A DNA stretch of 63,803 nt, counting the filler, from Dicyema japonicum (lineage: Eukaryota; Animalia; Dicyemida), in the NCBI GenBank assembly GCA_011109175.1. It is 6 parts of 6 records of this genome, joined end to end, with 100 filler letters (N's around TTAATTAATTAA, not from the genome) between each part and the next. Parts side by side here need not be neighbours in the genome. Positions count along the whole stretch, not along the records: positions 1 to 17,365 come from RDEW01000133.1; 5 more parts are not named here. One strand, 5' to 3'. Positions 256 to 14,000 of this stretch are shown piece after piece. Positions within the stretch are counted from its first letter, which is position 1, and each line of letters begins with the position of its first letter. The notes under the pieces were generated by a model that was not told the DNA's origin, ran no database searches, and saw only the letters and a list, made by a program, of their open reading frames with translations. A program made the position numbers and the translations under genes.

Positions 256-622
256 AGTTTATCATGTTAATGAGGGGACTTGCAGGACTGCGGAAGTGAG
301 AGTCTAATAACATGATGGCTCTTTTTTAACATTAGACTCGCGATCATTAGGCAGTATCTCTATTGCGTGCTCACTCCTGAAGGCCATAATGGAACTTTTT
401 TCCTAAAAATTGACTTTTATTTGTTTTTGTAATTTAAGGCAATAAAGTTTTATCATTTCAGAAATGTGATAGAAAATGTACGATGCTATGAGTTACCCAG
501 GGAGTCACCGGGCAATTACTAATACAGTCTATAGCCGCTTAACTTCTGTGATCGACGGAGTACAGCTGGTCACGGCTAAGTATGATCGTGGTAAAAATTC
601 TATAAAAACACTTAAATGAGAG

Positions 623-950: not shown

Positions 951-1323
951 TTTAAAAATAGCATTTTGTAATCTTTTTTATGTCTAATCACTCTTTTCAC
1001 TATTTTTAAAATTGACAACAAACCATAAAGTAGCACAAAACTGGACGCTACCAGTGTTCAGTAAAATGTACGTGGTGTAACGCAATAATCGAAAACGAAT
1101 CAGTTCAATCTCGTATTTGTTCTATTAAAATGAAAGAGCAGAACAAGATGGAATCAATTATTTTTTTATAAAATCCTGTGATGTTGTACGGTGACCTCAG
1201 CGGAGGGTAGTTTCCAAGGTTGGGAACACTAACAAAAATATTTGCTTTCGAATTTTAACTAATAGCTTAATTTTAATCTTTTAGTAATTAAAATATAAAT
1301 ATTAATTTTATAAATTATTTATT

Positions 1324-1660
1324 GCAAGGTCCTCGTTATTCCTATAGTAGTGACGTGGGAAGGAATTGCAACAAAGTATCACAAGGGTTATCTGAAGCAG
1401 TTGGGGTAGATAGAAGTTCCAGGCCTATCTACAGTCCACTGTGTTAAAGCGGACCCTAGAGAGCCTGACACTGGAGTATAGGAGGCAGAGCCCTGAGATG
1501 CCATATGGGCAGAGGGTTCAATTGGACAAGGCGCTCTCGGAGTTGTTTCAGCAACCAGAATCGAACCTACCTGAGGAGGCTGGCGAACAGGCAGGCGAGG
1601 AAGGTTGTTGATTATTAAATATATTAACTTTTTTTATTTTTTGTTAAATAAAGTGGGATT
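1324..1660 (+). mobile_element. 5'-truncated 3' end of RLE-type non-LTR retrotransposon
   Basis: Near-identical inverted copy of 3880-4200 (KVLVIPIV...STVLKRTLESLTLEYRR plus 3' UTR GAGGAAGGTTGTTGATTA). Confidence 0.85.
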
Positions 1661-1719: not shown

Positions 1720-2730
1720 CCAGGATCTCTCTAAAAGCCTCAGAAAGAGTTCAAAAACAACTACACACGATACCCTGCTGAAGCGCTCTTGTTGTTAAGT
1801 TGACAACTATTGGAACCACTTGCTATGGTTTTTAACGAGCTAATATCGAGGAAAGGTACGAAAGAGACCCTTTCTATATGACCCTACAATCAGACAGTTA
1901 TCTGAAGACAAAAGAAAAGTCGTTTAAAGCTAGCTACGAAGTGTGTGACAAGTTGGCCTCCTTATGCTGAATCAAGAAGACAAAGCAAATCACATTGGCC
2001 GCTATCTCAGGACTTTATTCCAAGTTGGCAATGCAAGGATCAGTCAATTCATTAAAACACTGAAACCACTGTCTACCAGTATTACAAAAGAAGTGATCAG
2101 TGTATTTAATTGACTGAAAAATAACCTTTCGGTCAGCTACGAAGGCGTTCCTGGTGAGCTGTTAAAGTATGCCCCAGAATGCGTTGGAAGTTCAATCGCG
2201 GAAATTTTAAACAACTTAAACGGCACAGCCCCTTTCCCATAGGACACGGAGTACAATTACCACTGGACTGGAAAGAAAGAAGGATCATTAGAAATTCTCA
2301 GACCTATTATCTTATTGGCTACTGTTAGAAAAATAGTATCAATCATCGTCCTAAATCGTACAAAATACAGTGAAAGAATACCTGTCTCACAGTCAGAATG
2401 GCTTCATGCGAAGACGTTAACCATTGATGTTGTATGGAGCTGCGAGGAATTGATCTGAGCAAGGGGTTCGACAGCATCGACATGAAAAATGATGAACATA
2501 CTAACAAACATATTAAATGAGGACTGCCTGTGGCTAGTAAGATTCCTTCTTCAGAAAAAGAGCCAACTTTAAAAGTTGGCATGAAGCACTCTGAAATTTC
2601 TTTAATGACATTGGTACTCCACAAGGGGATTCTCTGTCCCCCGTTTTGTTTGCCGTATATTTGGAGGCGGGGCACAGTTATCATCACCTACCAAACTTAT
2701 ATACGCGGATGATGTGGACTTTGTATCCAC
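1720..2730 (+). mobile_element. Degenerate APE-type (RTE-like) LINE reverse transcriptase
   Basis: Broken RT motifs read across frames: VPGELLKYAP, LRPIILLATVRKIVSIIVLNR, DLSKGFDSID, GTPQGDSLSP, LIYADDVDF. Confidence 0.7.
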
Positions 2731-2769
2731 CAATAAGGACTGTGTTATTTTTTAATTTTATTTATTTAT

Positions 2770-3718
2770 TTTAATAACCCGGGAACACCGAGAAAGAAAG
2801 ACAAAAGAGTTAAACAGTTAGGTAATCCCAGTCCTCGCAATCACTTGTGCCATTCGACGTCTGTGATCTTCCATCGTCCCCACTACTTTCCGGAAGAGCC
2901 TTCTCTCGGTCTTGCAGAGGAATCCGATCGGGGAATTTCTTATCCAATCGGTTTTCTCTTGCCATGGAAGGATCAGGCGAAGCGGATTTCCATCTTCTTC
3001 ACAGACGCGAAGAAATCCGAGCCACGACTACGGATCTTAGCTTCCATGAGTAGTGGGTCGACTGTTGATCCAGTGAGCTCTTTAATCTGGTGATCACATC
3101 CAAGACTTGTCATATGTGAATAGTTCGTGGTAAGGTACCTTCTTCGGTTTACGGGCACGCACCTTAATGTCCAGGTGTTTCGAGAATGGTTTGAAGCTAA
3201 TTCCAGCGTAATGTTTCATAAGGGTGTTAAGATGTAGGTGGCATAAGTGTTCAGGAAAAGACTTTCCGGTTCCGTCTGCATCATCCAGCTCCGACTTACT
3301 TGTTTAAGAGTTTTCCAGAAATATCGGGATGTACTTTTCCTGTCGAGGTGGTTAACTGGATGCTGCCATCTTTTGTCTTTGTGATCTTTTATGCTCTGAC
3401 AGATCCTTTTATTCAGTTGTCTGAAGGCTGTCAAAGACTTCATGTCCGACAGATGGCATCTCTTCAGCCGGTCTCTTTGTTTTATAAGACTTATTGTATA
3501 AGAGCTGAGGGTAGAAATAAACTTCTTGTATGACTATATAGGAATAAAAATATGGTCAGCTTTCTGAATGGCAGCGCTGATAATTTCTGCGGCATCATCT
3601 ATACAGCGAATTGGGGAGGATAATCTCCGGCCAAAAATTTATCCACAAGGTTACTGAAACCAGACCAGTCAACCTTCGTATAATCCTTGAATCTTTTTGA
3701 TTCCGCCGGACCGTCTCC
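2770..3718 (-). mobile_element. Scrambled APE-RT LINE fragments with 3' tail
   Basis: Linker segment RWQHPVNHLDRKSTSRYFWKTLK, APE-like LGCDH, and a CT-rich 3' UTR ending in TAAA repeats like the LINE at 34340. Confidence 0.55.
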
Positions 3719-3879: not shown

Positions 3880-5915
3880 AAACAATAAAAATTTAATATA
3901 TTTATTAATCAACAACCTTCCTCGCCTGCCTGTTCGCCAGCCTCCTCAGGCAGGTTCGATTCTGGTTGCTGAAACAACTCCGAGAGCGCTTTGTCTAATT
4001 GAACCCTCTGCCCATATGGCATCTCAGGGCTTTCCTCCTATACTCCAGTGTCAGGCTCTCTAGGGTCCGCTTTAACACAGTGGACTGTAGATAGGCCTGG
4101 AGCTTCCTATCTACCCCCAACTGCTTCAGATAACCCTTGTGGTAACTTTGTTGCAATTCCTTCCCACGTCTTACTATAGGAATAACGAGGACCTTGCAAC
4201 CAAGCATCTGCCCCATCTCGTTTGCAAGAAAGTCATACTTCCTTTTTTTCTCCACCTCCACAGTCTGCAAACGGTCTTGAGACGTGATGCCAACCTCTAT
4301 GATAAGGACTTGGCCAGACTCCTTATCGTGTACCACAATGTCCGGTTTATTGTGCTTGACTAGCACCGAGGTACGGATAACACTGTCTACCTTAATTTGG
4401 ACCCTGGTGTTCTCTACTACAGATTGCACCTTATGAGTCCGCAACTTTCTGGTGTGGCGAATACCATACTTATTGCATAGTAGAAGATGAAGACTCCTTA
4501 CTACCTCGTTGTGCCTCCACACATAGTCGTGGCAGAGCATGGATCCACATCGAGTGGCTAAATGATCAACCGACATGCTCCTTGACTTACAGTGGGGACA
4601 TGTATTTGTTGATCGACCCCAAAAAATATTGCGGTCTTGCATATACGTGTACAACGCCTCCGATCGAGGTGAGTTGTCACCGTATTTTAGCCATATTGTC
4701 GACGACTTAAGGTCGACATGTGGGTTGTCCAATGCTCTGAAGAGGACCTTATGAAGGCTTTTTAAGTTGATCTTTTCCATCAAATTATTATATTGTAATT
4801 CGATCAACGCCTTCACATTTACTAGCCCACCATCATCAACACCATACTTAGCAGACAAAAAAGGTCTGATAGTGCCTAGGTGGGTTGCCCGTGTTTTCTC
4901 GGTCGTTATTATGGCGTGCTTCCTAGCAGACACACTTGACCCAGCTATCAGGGTGTCGTGCATTCGCATTAGGATGCGCTCACTTAGTTGGACTACTCCA
5001 CACAGTCCACGGCCGAATTTATCACGGGGTAAATATAGTCTCTCCTTATTGGCTGCCAACACATGGACATGGTTCTCTCTGAGTACTCCACGGATCATAA
5101 CATCCATCTCATCATACTCTTTGGGCTCAAACTCCACAACACCTATGTAGTAGTTTAGCAGCGAGACAGCATACTCATTTAATGCTAGGAACAAATTCCT
5201 TGCATTTAGAGACGTCTTACACAATAACGCTGCTCTTTTACGGATGCCTTCAGTAATTTGTCGCTTTGTCTCAGGCATTATAAGGGACTTTGGAGATTCG
5301 GTAACACCCAGATACTTATATCCTTCGTGTTCCTCTAGGACTCTTACTAACTCGCTACATACTTGCGTGTTAGTCGCAGACTTTGAATAATTCAAATCTA
5401 GCCCTATACTCTCAAAGAATTCCCTGGCACAGACCCCCATGGAGTAGAGCTCCTCGGCTGTTCGAGCATACATCTTCAGGTCATCGATAAAAAGAAGGTG
5501 ATTTGTACTGAAACAGACCCCTTCACAATGAACTGGTATTTGCTCAAACCGGTCATTGAGGCGGCGACTCAATGGCTCCAAACAGAGAACAAAGAGTAGC
5601 GGAGACATGCTATCCCCTGAAGGATCCCCCTCTTGAGTTTTACCTCGCCTATCCGGTGCCTATTATAGTTCAGATGAATACTCCACCTATTCATCACAGC
5701 CACTACAAAGCTGATGAACCACACAGGCATACACAGACTGTGTAGGCACTCGACAAGGTAAGAATGATCAACTGAATCGTAAGCCTTCTTCACATCCACC
5801 CACATAGACAAAAGTGAGTTTCCGTGAGACACAGAAAGGCATTTGTTGATCAAAGCCTGCTCTTTTGCCCCCTGACAATTTCGCACAGTTACCAACTGAT
5901 TCTCGGAGAGAATCC
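3880..5915 (-). mobile_element. RLE-type (R4/Dong/R2-like) non-LTR retrotransposon, 5'-truncated, one frameshift
   Basis: RT motifs VDVKKAYDSVDH, RGILQG/DSMSPLLF (1-nt frameshift in a G run near 5615), HLLFIDDLKMY, YKYLG; CCHC knuckle CPHC...HLATRC; RHNEVV; restriction-like endonuclease KPDIVV...IIEVG...EKKRKY. ORFs 5569-5895 and 3995-5608. Confidence 0.95.
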
Positions 5916-6239
5916 CATTTGCATTTTTTATTAGATTATAAAAATAATTAAAATAATTAATTTATAAAATAATTTAAAAACAATAGGTGGAACATAAATA
6001 TTAGCAATGTTGACTTTTCCAATGACGGTTGGAATCGAGATACCTGTTATTTTTGTAATCTGGTGATAAATGCACTTTCAAGACGTTAAGGTTGCCTCGG
6101 AGAGATTACAATTACTTGTAAACTGCTTAATCTACTGGCTAAATGAAAAATAGTCCGTCGATCAGCCCGGAAAAATCGGTTACGTCTCTCCTTACTTCTG
6201 ATTAGTGAATATCCAACAGGACAGTGGATATAGAAGCAA

Positions 6240-7040: not shown

Positions 7041-8224
7041 ATGTTAATTAGATTGTTAACTTTTCGTGATCCACATACTTTGTCATGATCTTGGCATCGC
7101 GTGCCTATAATAATAGAATTGTAAGTGATCTTTTCTTTTCAGCAGTTTCTGATTGTCTTGAGTGATTATGAAATTTTCTTCTGGGATTGAAGAAGTGGCG
7201 TTTATATATATTTTTTCGATTAAACTTCGACATCAGATTTTTTTCTACGAAACACATAAATTTTGTTAACTGTGTCTGCTGTCATGGAAGTTGAACTAAA
7301 AAAGGACGTTTAGTGAAAAAAGTACATCTTAAAAATTGACATTCTGGTTGTGACAAAATACTCTCTGCTAAAAAAATCTTATCTACGGATCTTCTAGAGA
7401 AAGCCTTGGTTGGGTTAGATTCATTTTCCAAATTTTTGGTGAACTTGACCTCTTAAAACAAAATAGGGGTTGGAGATACTTAATGGGACGTACAGGTGTC
7501 ATTAGGTATAAGTTTGCTGCTTAATTGAGACTATCCTTCGATATAACTTATTTTAATCTCCCGAATGGATCGAAGCCGTTTTGGTAATTGTGAGTTCTTA
7601 TGAACGAGTTATCTGTTATTATTATGTTCGAGTGGTTCATTTGAATTGTCATTCTTACAGCATGTAATTGTATTCAATTTTCTTGAACGAGAACAAAATG
7701 GGACTATGTCCTCACTTTTCTGTAATACACAAACAAGACAGCAGAAAGATCATGGATAAGAATCTCCATAAATTCACAAGCATCTTATTGTCTCCATTTC
7801 TAAACTGACTGTTGACCGTGTTGAAGAGATACACATATGAGTGAGGCCATATCACAGCAATTAAAAAATTAGTAGAGATGGGTGGTGCCCATATCGTAGA
7901 CGAGCCGGATTTAGCAGGATGTTTTTTCGATAAAGAAACAGGGCGTGGTAGTTAATGATAAATTAAAAAGGGACACAGCTAAAATCTAGAGTAGGTTTAA
8001 CTATGGTACTAAGTCACTGAAGTTCTATAGGGATCAACAGAAATTTTAATGGAAAAGAGAATTTCTGTCTAATTGACAAAGCCGATAAAACTGCGGAGAC
8101 GTGTGAGGAGGAAAGTTACTGGTACAACGAATAGTGAAAAGCAAACACAAGTGGAACACGTAAGTGCATTTAACTAACCAATTAACTAATAAAATTGTTA
8201 AATATTAAAGTGTTAGCACAAATA

Positions 8225-9435
8225 ATTATTAGCGCGACGAAGACTGCTTAAATGCATCTTCCGCCTCCAAAGTCCACTCAGAGTCTCATATGACAACTCC
8301 ACTCCAGAAATCTTAGCTAAGCTTGGATCACTTGCTAGTCATATCGCGCGTGTCCCGGAGGCGATACTGCCATCCGACACTCCTGGTAACGACCCTCCGT
8401 GTTGACAAACGTCTTCGTATAGGCAGCACATGGCAAGACGACATCCGCGATCTCAGTCCCAAAATCCCATGCAACCTATATCAATAATAAAGTGTAACCT
8501 AAATACAACAACCACACAATCCTCGGCCTACTGATTTCTTTCGAATTCCTTCAGCTCCACAAAGTACCAAAATTTAAGCTTCTTCAGGTCTATTTGTCCT
8601 CCTTTGTACCCCAAATCCAGTGCTCCGACTTGGCTCGTTTTCTAACAGTCATTCTTCGACTTACCTGGTGGACTATGCTGAAGAGAGAAATCCCCGATGA
8701 CACCAGATTTGAGATCCTACGACATACGGAATACAGCTTCTTGGCCATTTCGACATCCTTTGAAGTGCCGATGATCCTAGCAGAATAACTGGATTTCTGG
8801 TTCGTTTAATTTTCAAGAAATAGTAAGCATATGCTAATCACTTGAAAATTTGTGGTTATCGGAGGCAATTTTATCCAGAACTGACACACTGTCTCCCAAA
8901 TACTAAAAAAATTTGAGGACTACATACCTCATAATCGTAGGTAGGGTAGAAAGACACGTGTGTGACCGTTTCGCTATCTTTGGTACAAGTGCATTAATAC
9001 CTTTTCTTATCCTGCAGTTGAGAAGGGGGACTCCAGGCGAGGATTAAATTTAACAATGAAGACCAGATCAGCATTTTCAATACTCTGAATTCACACATTG
9101 AGGCAATATGACTCACGAATGTCCGTTGAGAAAGGAAATGATTCTTCAGTAAATAGCTATCACAGTACAGTCTGCTGAAGAAGTCCTTTAGAACAGACAG
9201 CATCTTCAAATCCGCAAACCGGCAAGACAAAATAGCCATTTGGTCAGATTCGACAGATTTTTAACTGAAATATCACTTCACCAGTCATCCCTCGTTGATC
9301 TCCTATTGGTTTGATACAATGAATTAACCTCATTTAACCTCGGTAGAATTCTTTGAACGTGGTCTGACTTACTGCATGCAGTTATATTACTTCCAACTGC
9401 GTCAATTAAAATCAATACTCTCTACCCGTCTAAGG
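8225..9435 (-). pseudogene. NDUFS1: NADH:ubiquinone oxidoreductase 75 kDa subunit (complex I) pseudogene
   Basis: Colinear matches to human NDUFS1: DAVGSNI...QRILPRLNE|EINEG*; LSVLKDFFSRL; TEESFPFSTDIRESYCLN; IENADLVFIVKFNPRLE; PVILLGSSALQR; QVGALDLGYK; [39 protein letters not shown]. Stops TGA at 9285-9287 and TAG at 8335-8337 both replace conserved Trp; several frameshifts; micro-introns retained (9303-9328, 26 nt). Confidence 0.9.
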
Positions 9436-9976: not shown

Positions 9977-10918
9977 CAGTGCAACCTCCATTTGGGCGGA
10001 CCTCCTCATTGGGGCACATTCATTTTTGGTATCTGATAATTCTATTGTTTAGGAGCAGTATCTATAATTAAACAAAATTATATGAACTTTATAAATAATG
10101 GGTCCGTACAATCAAATTGTCTTAGTCAAATTTCAGAGAAGAGACAGTCTGTCACAAAATTCGATAAAATTGTTTATGAATGCTTTTTTAAAGCAAGGGA
10201 AGAATTTATTCCCGTTTCAGGACCTATTCTTAAAAACATTGCTATAAAAGTAGCTAGGAATTGAACTATACCTCATTCAGAGGTTCGAATGGTTGGCTTG
10301 AAAAATTTAAGAAAAGAAACAATTTGTCATTTAAGACAATAAGTGGTGAAAAAAATTCGTGTGATATTTCTTGCCTTGGAATTTTTGATAAGTACGATGA
10401 CTATGGAAAGACATGACACAAATACACTCTGAATCAATTACTAATTGTTGGAAGAAAATTGATGCCGTTTTCAAACTCTCTCATTGGTGAATAATGAATT
10501 GGAGAGTTTAGATAACATAATTAAAAATATAATTACTGAAAATGAAGTAGAAAATGATGACGAAATATATACGACGGAGTAAAATGTAATCTATTCTCAT
10601 TTGGAAACAATAACAGCGATGAATACACTTGAAGAGAACATTTTCAATTTGTTTTCCTGAAGCTTTGAAAGATTACTATAATTTCAGGAAAATATTAGGA
10701 ATGCAAATAAAAAAATCCGCAACCGGATGGAACTTAACAGACTATTTTCCTATCGTTAAATAAATTTGTTTTTAATATTATAAAAAAACATTATTTATCT
10801 ATAAATTTATTAAAAAGCAAATTTAAATAGTTTAAACTGTGGATAAATCTAAAGAAAATGCGAACCTCCATTTTTGGGGCATTTTTTTTAAATAGGTGCC
10901 CAAATAGAGGTCATACTG
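9977..10918 (+). mobile_element. pogo/Tigger-like DNA transposon, internally deleted
   Basis: TA-flanked imperfect TIRs CAGTGCAACCTCCATTTGGGC / GCCCAAATAGAGGTCATACTG; CENP-B-type HTH remnant AREEFIPVSGPILK...SNGWLEKFKKRNNLSFKTISGE. Confidence 0.8.
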
Positions 10919-11049: not shown

Positions 11050-14000
11050 GACAGGAGAATCTCATGACATTTCTTAAGAATTGTAAGAACCGAACACACA
11101 GCCGACATATACTTTTAGACACGACTATTTAGATTTATTTGTATTCCGAACCTGTCTTACCGTAGTCATAAATCTTTTAAATTAAATGGGTATCTCATCA
11201 GAAATTAATGGTATCTATATGATGACAGTCTTCTCTGTGTCTGAAAGCTGCTATTCTTTCCTCCATAGTCACCTTCATTGATTAAGTCCGTTGCTAGTTG
11301 AATACTTGTCTACTATTATTTTTTTCGTTTTAAATAGACCTTCGTCTATTTCTAAGATCATTCAATTCGTCGCCTATAGTTAAACAGAAAATACCAATTT
11401 TTGATTTTATCGAAATAATCAATTCAAGTAAATATACCTCTCTGATAAACATTTGCCAATCTACTGTTGTCGCCGAACTCAAGTCAAGAATGTTTTTGAC
11501 TAGTTAAGATCTCCACACAAAAATAAATCGAATAGCATCTTCAAAATTCACTTTAGAGTTCTCTAATCATGTACCTAAGTATGTAACCATGAATAATACC
11601 AGATAATAACCTAATAATAGTCTTACAGATTCTTTTCAAACGGCACCACCTTTGATGCTTTAAGGATTATTGCGTGACCTTTTTTGCAATATTTTTCTAT
11701 TGGAAAAAATCTTTTTTTCTTGTAAAAAGTTTAATAGATTTTTCTTTTTTTGACAAGACAAACAAAGCATCCTAGGATAGGACCGCGTATTTTGCTTGTT
11801 TTGATCCTCGGCCATCAAAACCAGGATAAAGAGGCAATTTAATGTAGGTTGCAAAGGGCGAATATCTATAGTTTCCACGTGCTAGATTAATTTGTGTAAT
11901 GGCATTTACAGGGTATAGTTTAAATGGGAGAATAAATGTCCACGATTTAATGAGAGTAAAAAAGTATTCATAAACATTAATAGGTTCGAGTTAAAAAGGG
12001 ACTTTAGACATTGATGTACTTATTTGCGTGTTCAGGTCCATCCAACAAGAAATGTTATCTCGAAGGAATTAGTTATTAATTCCAGAATATACATAATAAT
12101 CTGTCTCATTTAGACAAAAAAATTATTCTAAGTCAACTAATTAAATGATCCAAGCTTCTACTAACTCCCCAAGTCTTTCTGAGTGGTGCTAGCATCCGAA
12201 AGCGTCTTTTCAAATATCTAAAGAGGAGCGTGATCCAGGTGTGCTTCTTTAGGACTTATTGGGATTTCTCCAAATGGGATCTGGTTCACCTTACTCAAGA
12301 GACTCTCAATAGCTGGCCGACATTCGAAAAGACATCTCCTCATTCCATAAAAGCTTCAGGATCATGGGATTAGTTAGTTTGGTTTTACCATTGGTCTTTG
12401 GAATAATTTCATTTCAACTTTCGTTTTTTCGTGTGAGATAATTCGATTCTAAATTATAATATATTTAACTTTTCAAGCATCTTTGGTTATTATTTACCTC
12501 TGGTCCCTTCGATTGAATGAAATTGGTGGCTAACAGAATGTCAAAAAGAGCGGATGCTCCTAGAGATCCGTCAGGTGTATTTGGTGCTGTGCATAACTAT
12601 CTTGGATATATTATGATCAAAGATTTATGGATATACTATGATCAAGGATTTTAAATTGCCAATCAAGGGTGTATTAAGATAAAACACGAATTATGTGTTA
12701 TACATTAGTAAGCAACTCTAGTGATTCAGAGCTCATTACCTTTAACGTGTTGGAGGGAGTTGATTCAGTCATCCATTCCGCCATCTTTTTTGCTGTCAAG
12801 AATCCGATACCAAGTAGGGAAGAAAACGATTTGGTTTTAAAATCTCTAAGGTTTAACATACTACATCATTAAGACGAATTATTTTATTAAAGTAAAGTGT
12901 TTATTTTTCTTTGAAAGTCTTGGCTCTCTCGGAAAGTAGAGGTGGTGGATTTATTAACCAATCATCTCCTTGTATACGATGAAAAAAATAACTGGGTATC
13001 AGATTCTAACTAAAAAAGTCTGATAAACTAATGTTTCGAGATCAAATCTTGAGGAAAAAATTTAATAAAACTTTTCGGTTATCATAATTTTGATTGGTGT
13101 AGATATTATGAATACATGTTCATTTAAAGTCGATACCACACGTGGTTTTAATATCATCTTCTTATATGTTTATATGTGTTCTCAGCGGCTACCTGGTGGA
13201 AGGGTTTTAAGTTATCAGTATAATGTATTGTGATTTTTATTTCTCGGGGAATTAATGCCTAGATAGAACCAAAAAAAATCCTATGTTCTTAATATCTTTA
13301 GTAAACTTCACGTGACTTCTCAGAGCGGATCATTCTTATATAGGTTCCTCTATTAGAAACTCTTATTTACTAAGTTAAGAATATGAGAGTTCTCAGGTGG
13401 GAATCTAACTCGAATATTAAATTATTCTTATTGGTTTGTCGTATATTTTACATTCGCCAATTGTCTGTCTATTTTTGCTACAAAGGGGTTACATCTATGA
13501 TTCGTTCACAAGAATAATCGTTCAAGAGGCTTATGTCCGAACATCGTCATAAAACTGAATGATCTTTATCAAATATTCAGTAATGATGCCGTGTATCAAA
13601 TTTACAAATAAACAATATAATAAAAAATAATTTTTAATTACATTTGAAAAACTTTAAATAAACTCAGCGGGCGTTGTTAATTCTTGTGAATGGGCGTAAA
13701 CTCAATTAACAAAGTAAATATGCAAAACAATATTGGATATGACGATTCGTTGTATTTTGAAACCTTATTTTAGGGCAAAAATGATTTACACGCGGTTTGT
13801 AGATAGGAATTCGACTACCTTGAACCTACTTGATAATTTTGGTAATTACAACCCACGTGGTCTTGTTGTGCTCATTAGGAAATTAGAGGATTTACAATGT
13901 CTCCATTCAAAGTTGTTACATTTGAAACGTCTTCACTCGGTTGTTCATGTGTGATTATAGTAGATTCTTAAGGGAAAGGTATATTCCTTAAAAAATTCAT

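Follow-up and report, generated by a model that had tools for sequence, protein, structure and literature searches.

The window, the 17-kb stretch of DNA that was analysed, carries on its minus strand at 8235-9431 a dead, truncated copy of NDUFS1, the 75-kDa subunit of complex I. The copy is colinear with residues ~252-655 of a 729-residue reference, and ultra-short introns are still recognizable within it. We consider it reasonably likely that this is a non-functional, unprocessed pseudogene fragment of a dicyemid genome, a duplicate or rearranged piece of a gene that works elsewhere in an animal still using complex I.

The homology on the minus strand is far above chance. Pfam searches of the separate stop-free pieces recognize Fer4_NDSU1 (PF22151, E 1.4e-7) at 9281-9421 and Molybdopterin (PF00384, E 1.3e-8) at 8338-8475, with a second Molybdopterin match (E 0.016) at 9010-9090, and the piece at 8338-8475 also matches solved NDUFS1 chains over residues ~545-590 (E ~1e-9). 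In tblastn, 120 full-length animal NDUFS1 proteins align as colinear HSPs descending from 9409 to 8225. The pseudogene was aligned to the oyster and annelid NDUFS1 by purpose-written dynamic programming aware of frameshifts and introns; the scores are 476 and 442, respectively, against 48 for a shuffled protein, and identity to the oyster protein reaches 47% over 332 aligned codons. The motifs appear in changing frames: RRVESID / LIDAVGSN..RILPRLNE, a WISD-like EINE block, ESDQMAILSCRFADLKMLSVLKDFFSRL, LFTEESFPF..IENADLVFIVKFNPRLESP, PLLNCRIRK, PTYDYE / a 103-aa stretch, and LAKISGVELSYETL. The first-pass annotation had proposed a pseudogene from a series of colinear NDUFS1 motifs, a call that holds. 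Both the Fer4_NDSU1 and the molybdopterin-like domains of NDUFS1/NuoG are present, and the copy is colinear with this family across them; unlike intact NDUFS1/NuoG, it has no open reading frame and lacks the N-terminal 2Fe-2S/4Fe-4S domains, the C-terminal domain and ~40 internal codons. The arrangement of blocks, introns and lesions is as follows.

8235-9431 (-): NDUFS1 pseudogene fragment (Pfam, solved chains, tblastn, alignments).
9329-9431 (-): block RRVESID / LIDAVGSNITACSKSDHVQRILPRLNE, Fer4_NDSU1 domain (PF22151, 1.4e-7), interrupted by a +1 frameshift within a T run (9410-9413), found with both references.
9303-9328 (-): micro-intron 1, 26 nt, GT..AG, joining RLNE to EINE (alignment).
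9261-9302 (-): block EINE..W*SD, locally frameshifted and carrying stops, followed by a deletion scar (oyster alignment).
Stops in the EINE..W*SD block (-): TGA at 9285-9287 or 9278-9280, depending on frame; TGA at 9273-9275; TAA at 9261-9263.
9025-9260 (-): blocks ESDQMAILSCRFADLKMLSVLKDFFSRL and LFTEESFPF..IENADLVFIVKFNPRLESP; lesions are a -1 frameshift near 9157 and a TGA stop in frame at 9091-9093 (tblastn, both alignments).
8928-9030 (-): blocks PLLNCRIRK.. and ..PTYDYE; the frame shifts by -1 within a C run near 9029, and at least once again between 8945 and 9000.
8903-8927 (-): micro-intron 2, 25 nt, GT..AG, joining TYDYE to YLGDS (both alignments).
8820-8845 (-): 26-nt non-homologous spacer between ..HKF and FLKIKRTRNPVILLGSSALQR (reading of the sequence).
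8665-8819 (-): blocks FLKIKRTRNPVILLGSSALQR and DVEMAKKLYSVCRRIS..SIVHQ; the frame shifts by -1 near 8757 (tblastn, alignment).
8642-8664 (-): micro-intron 3, 23 nt, GTAAGT..AG, joining IVHQ to KTSQVGALDLGYK (KTSQVGALD; oyster alignment).
8507-8641 (-): blocks KTSQVGALDLGYKGG.., ILVLCGAEGI.. and ..EDCVVV, with frameshifts near 8572 and 8530 and, in one frame, a TAG at 8528-8530.
8476-8506 (-): micro-intron 4, 31 nt, GT..AG, joining EDCVVV to VAWDFG (acceptor at 8476 with both references).
8338-8475 (-): best-preserved block, 46 aa, the end of the molybdopterin-like domain (PF00384, 1.3e-8; solved chains, ~1e-9).
8335-8337 (-): TAG replacing the conserved Trp of REDW (tblastn, both alignments).
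8235-8334 (-): final block with homology, QVIQA / LAKISGVELSYETLSGLWRR..; the frame shifts by -1 at 8324-8325 (tblastn, both alignments).

The introns reveal how the copy arose. Each of the four GT..AG segments connects residues that directly follow one another in intact NDUFS1, and the frame is restored every time; for the fourth, which restores it into the next block, an alternative donor would define an intron of 23 nt (8476-8498). The spacer at 8820-8845, which the oyster alignment renders as inserted codons with stops, is probably a fifth micro-intron that has lost its usable 3' AG. The spliceosomal introns of the parent gene are thus kept, as in an unprocessed pseudogene, and no A run of the kind found in processed pseudogenes follows the point near 8235 where the homology stops on the 3' side. 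The compact span of ~1210 nt for ~400 residues had suggested a 5'-truncated retrocopy, but the four frame-restoring micro-introns rule this out: a copy that retains them was not retroposed and comes from genomic DNA. The original description of the locus as a decayed pseudogene with introns, and not a retrocopy, therefore holds. Retained introns, frameshifts and stops, and the lack of a poly-A tail are all shared with unprocessed pseudogenes, duplicated or unitary. The copy differs from the usual members of that class in that its introns are only 23-31 nt long, and four of the probable five retain GT..AG despite the surrounding lesions. Among animals, introns below 30 nt are reported only for myxobolid myxozoans and Dicyema japonicum (PMC13644364); the myxobolid medians are 22-27 bp (PMC13644364), and the mean intron of D. 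japonicum is 38 bp (PMC6736024). Since both groups possess ultra-short introns, dicyemids and myxobolids are inseparable by intron length alone.

Removal of the introns does not produce the uninterrupted reading frame expected of a functional NDUFS1. The spliced sequence still contains 10-13 frameshifts and 3-4 in-frame stops, the count depending on which of the two references is used; overall, we put the damage at ~10 frameshifts and 3-5 in-frame stops, and the lesion load amounts to ~1 per 100 nt. The +1 frameshift at 9410-9413 and the cluster of frameshift and stops at 9273-9290 are independent of the reference, and both references likewise support the -1 frameshifts near 9157, near 9029 and at 8324-8325, the TGA at 9091-9093, and at least one frameshift at 8945-9000. 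More frameshifts occur between ~8840 and 8500, where the two references differ in placement and our own reading sets them near 8757, 8572 and 8530. Directly after the EINE block, an in-frame deletion has removed 38-43 codons, leaving a scar at 9261-9275. These results agree with the numerous frameshifts recognized at the outset, and with the estimate of 35-40 codons missing after EINEG. Of two conserved Trp codons said to have become stops, the TAG at 8335-8337 is solid. The other, at 9285-9287, is ambiguous and only partly confirmed: a better alignment in its vicinity has an intact TGG at 9281-9283, out of frame by ~4 extra bases, followed by a TGA at 9278-9280, so that the pseudogene reads W*SD where the oyster reference has WISD. 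Whichever reading of the stop cluster is adopted, the pseudogene is disabled at 9273-9290. The TGA at 9091-9093 and the loss of the C-terminal ~70 residues are additional to the defects described initially.

Both ends of the gene are missing from the window. No homology to NDUFS1 residues 1-250 or 660-729 is detected anywhere in the 17 kb by tblastn with the 120 references, and the N-terminal 2Fe-2S and 4Fe-4S domains (PF13510, PF10588) are not found in the window either; the absence of a recognizable N-terminal Fe-S domain, first remarked for the upstream region, extends by both tblastn and Pfam to all 17 kb. Outside the NDUFS1 locus and the main reverse transcriptase ORF, stop-free segments of at least 50 aa yield only transposon domains in Pfam. 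One candidate for a second, inverted NDUFS1 fragment, 22 residues (..RKVEVVDLLTNH..) at 12891-12956 (+) corresponding to residues ~239-260, reaches E ~0.04-0.1 with many references, but is probably a chance match: at the DNA level it does not resemble the pseudogene, and its local score is no better than that of shuffled sequence. A short AT-rich palindrome (8216-8235, GCACAAATAATTATTAGCGC region) is located exactly at the 3' limit of NDUFS1 homology and may mark a breakpoint. The exon blocks have a GC content of 42%, the introns 23-39% and the flanks 28-34%. The decay of the copy is substantial but not ancient, as indicated by the GC content preserved in the exon blocks and the GT..AG termini preserved in four of the probable five introns.

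The pseudogene lies among mobile element remnants, being flanked by a DNA transposon remnant, AT-rich filler and retrotransposon debris. Two elements stand out.

3932-5949 (-): non-LTR retrotransposon of the R2 type, reverse transcriptase, 5'-truncated and with one frameshift (Pfam, protein matches).
10040-10413 (+): pogo/Tc5-type DNA transposon remnant with an HTH_Tnp_Tc5 domain (Pfam 3.7e-6; ORFs).

The retrotransposon includes a stop-free stretch of 554 codons, 3 kb from the pseudogene, and, as we read the sequence, a restriction-like endonuclease at its C-terminus. A second R2-type fragment, consisting of the 3' end only, is present at 1323-1572 (+). Among the 120 matches listed for the 3932-5949 element, the best proteins are 70% identical and labelled Octopus sinensis. 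The next relatives among the matches listed, at 35-48%, belong to microsporidia (Hamiltosporidium, Vairimorpha, Dictyocoela), Babesia and house-dust mites; this patchy distribution may result from horizontal spread between parasites or from contamination. Immediately upstream of the pseudogene, the element at 10040-10413 represents a DNA transposon in decay, with no DDE domain recognizable in the scanned segments of at least 50 aa. At 475-593 (-), amid repeat debris, a 5S rRNA match spans the full model length with 50.5 bits (gathering score 38), and could represent a 5S gene or pseudogene, or else an element derived from 5S. Repeats dominate the window, which has a GC content of 37.2% and one scaffold gap of 141 N. 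The published D. japonicum genome has 36.7% GC, 48.9% repeats and 4.1% gaps (PMC6736024). The window combines several dicyemid traits: introns of 23-31 nt, ~37% GC, abundant repeats, and kinship with DNA in the assembly of a cephalopod host. A dicyemid, D. japonicum or a close relative, is therefore the likely source, an assignment drawn from composition and one transposon family, the sole link to a known organism, and not from a conserved marker gene.

This kinship is most apparent in contig VCDQ01002019.1 of the Octopus sinensis assembly (GCA_006345805.1), which matches the R2-type element of the window with 73% DNA identity over 1758 nt. Beside the same retrotransposon family, on the minus strand at 1844-3273, the contig carries a gene for a UAP56-like DEAD-box helicase with two 25-nt GT..AG introns, located at HPSE|VQHQCIPQ and FMQD|PLEIYIDDE. 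The genes of the contig are annotated as octopus ('uncharacterized protein LOC...'). While the labels suggest an octopus origin for the retrotransposon of the window, the 25-nt introns on the matching contig rule it out: a contig whose helicase gene carries such introns is not octopus nuclear DNA, but derives from a micro-intron organism living in the octopus. VCDQ01002019.1 looks like dicyemid DNA within the assembly of its host, O. sinensis being the species from which D. japonicum is collected (PMC6854800). Several other transposon matches labelled O. sinensis are found on contigs of 136-400 kb, and may likewise be parasite DNA.

That NDUFS1 is in fact intact here, with the lesions produced by assembly or sequencing errors or by a non-standard genetic code, is extremely improbable. 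Several of the 1-nt frameshifts do fall in short homopolymer runs (T4 at 9410, C5 at 9029), as errors might. The stops of substitution type (TGA at 9091-9093, TAG at 8335-8337), the ~40-codon deletion and the lost gene ends are, however, atypical of assembly error, and the 554-codon stop-free frame only 3 kb away argues that the lesions are not assembly noise: it implies a low rate of indel errors and is compatible with the standard code. No single codon reassignment can repair the gene, since TAG occupies one Trp position whereas TGA occurs at further ones. A code in which TGA specifies Trp is rejected in view of that TAG, the frameshifts that persist, and the 554-codon ORF. The fragment covers the central part of NDUFS1 alone, comprising the last Fe-S cluster domain and the sequence up to and including the molybdopterin-like domain. 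In the reading that we favour, it would have arisen by partial duplication of a working NDUFS1 at the DNA level, or as a piece of that gene displaced by rearrangement, and would have drifted neutrally ever since, with the working gene placed elsewhere in the genome and complex I still in use. Dicyemid mitochondrial minicircles encode nad1-5, cob, cox1-3 and atp6 (PMC6543705), and all of the minicircle genes except atp6 and nad5 were found by RNA-seq (PMC6543705). Given that the mitochondrial nad genes are kept and nad1-4 transcribed, complex I is presumably in use in dicyemids, and an intact NDUFS1 is expected elsewhere. A dead partial duplicate or rearranged piece is also the most economical explanation in view of the loss of both ends, the transposon flanks, and the broken spare copies of respiratory genes known from dicyemids. 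Truncation alone does not prove duplication, as deletions and inserted transposons can equally strip the ends from a gene that decays where it stands. Database searches for the parent gene found no intact NDUFS1 of the same organism: a word-based search with the 46-aa block returned no candidate of 25-80 aa, and exact look-ups of two ORFs of the window were empty, both results being uninformative with regard to a second copy. Cluster representatives searched with phmmer yielded only generic NDUFS1 fragments, none above 74% identity, and every one retains three residues missing from the pseudogene; the best long match is the only gene on a 1.6-kb JGI contig and does not identify the parent.

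The first-pass annotation read the locus as the signature of an animal losing aerobic respiration, related or similar to the myxozoan Henneguya salminicola. Neither part of this proposal gains support, and the first is probably wrong, as dicyemids keep transcribed nad1-4, cob and cox1-3 (PMC6543705). In its general form, the proposal makes the pseudogene the sole NDUFS1 locus, a unitary pseudogene decaying in place in a micro-intron parasite, a dicyemid or a member of another lineage with no such loss known so far, that is losing or has lost complex I, which we consider unlikely. Introns are kept, as they would be at the original locus, and no second NDUFS1 copy is seen within the 17-kb window, though the window is uninformative about the rest of the genome. 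Dicyemids inhabit the renal sacs of cephalopods and have strongly reduced genomes (PMC6736024), and their extra circular contigs carry nad2 and nad4 homologues that are interrupted by stops and frameshifts (PMC6543705). Against these points stand the open mitochondrial nad1-5 genes of dicyemids, with nad1-4 found in RNA-seq (PMC6543705), and the nature of the copy itself—a fragment without either gene end, lying among transposon remnants. That it is specifically the only NDUFS1 locus of a dicyemid, in a lineage dismantling complex I while still carrying mitochondrial nad genes, seems quite unlikely. It is very unlikely that the DNA comes from H. salminicola itself or from another myxobolid; as loss of the respiratory chain is already published for H. 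salminicola, the proposal would in that case be correct but not new. Myxobolids likewise have ultra-short introns, and H. salminicola lacks mtDNA (PMC13644364), but its GC content is 29.1% (PMC13644364) compared with 37.2% in the window. The closest transposon kin (70% protein identity, 73% DNA identity) are on contigs labelled O. sinensis, one of them with a micro-intron gene, and no myxozoan protein occurs among the 120 transposon matches listed.

Returning to the duplicate or rearranged piece of a dicyemid gene, two comparisons help to place it. In H. salminicola, respiratory-chain genes are described as both lost and pseudogenized (Yahalomi et al. 2020, in the account given by PMC13644364 and PMC10192318). 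The pseudogene recalls this case as a broken nuclear gene of the respiratory chain in an animal parasite that is highly reduced and has ultra-short introns; dicyemids differ in retaining mitochondrial genes for complexes I, III and IV that are largely transcribed (PMC6543705), and one broken NDUFS1 copy does not establish that it is the sole copy. The extra circular contigs of Dicyema sp. (PMC6543705) present another parallel, with broken spare respiratory genes (nad2, nad4) beside working ones. Those are mitochondrial-type genes on small circular DNAs, whereas the NDUFS1 fragment is nuclear, intron-bearing and situated in transposon-rich chromosomal DNA.

As it stands, the locus is nothing more unusual than a dead copy of a gene in the genome of a parasite rich in repeats, and it indicates that the pseudogene originated by DNA-level duplication and not retroposition. 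It also demonstrates that ultra-short introns can retain GT..AG in a heavily damaged copy, and so offers a rough neutral yardstick for such introns. The case carries a caution as well: loss of respiration cannot be read from a single broken respiratory gene without a genome-wide search. The fragment would be of great importance only if it were the sole copy of NDUFS1; in a dicyemid, a bilaterian parasite, this would reveal a second, independent animal abandoning part of aerobic respiration, caught in the middle of the process.
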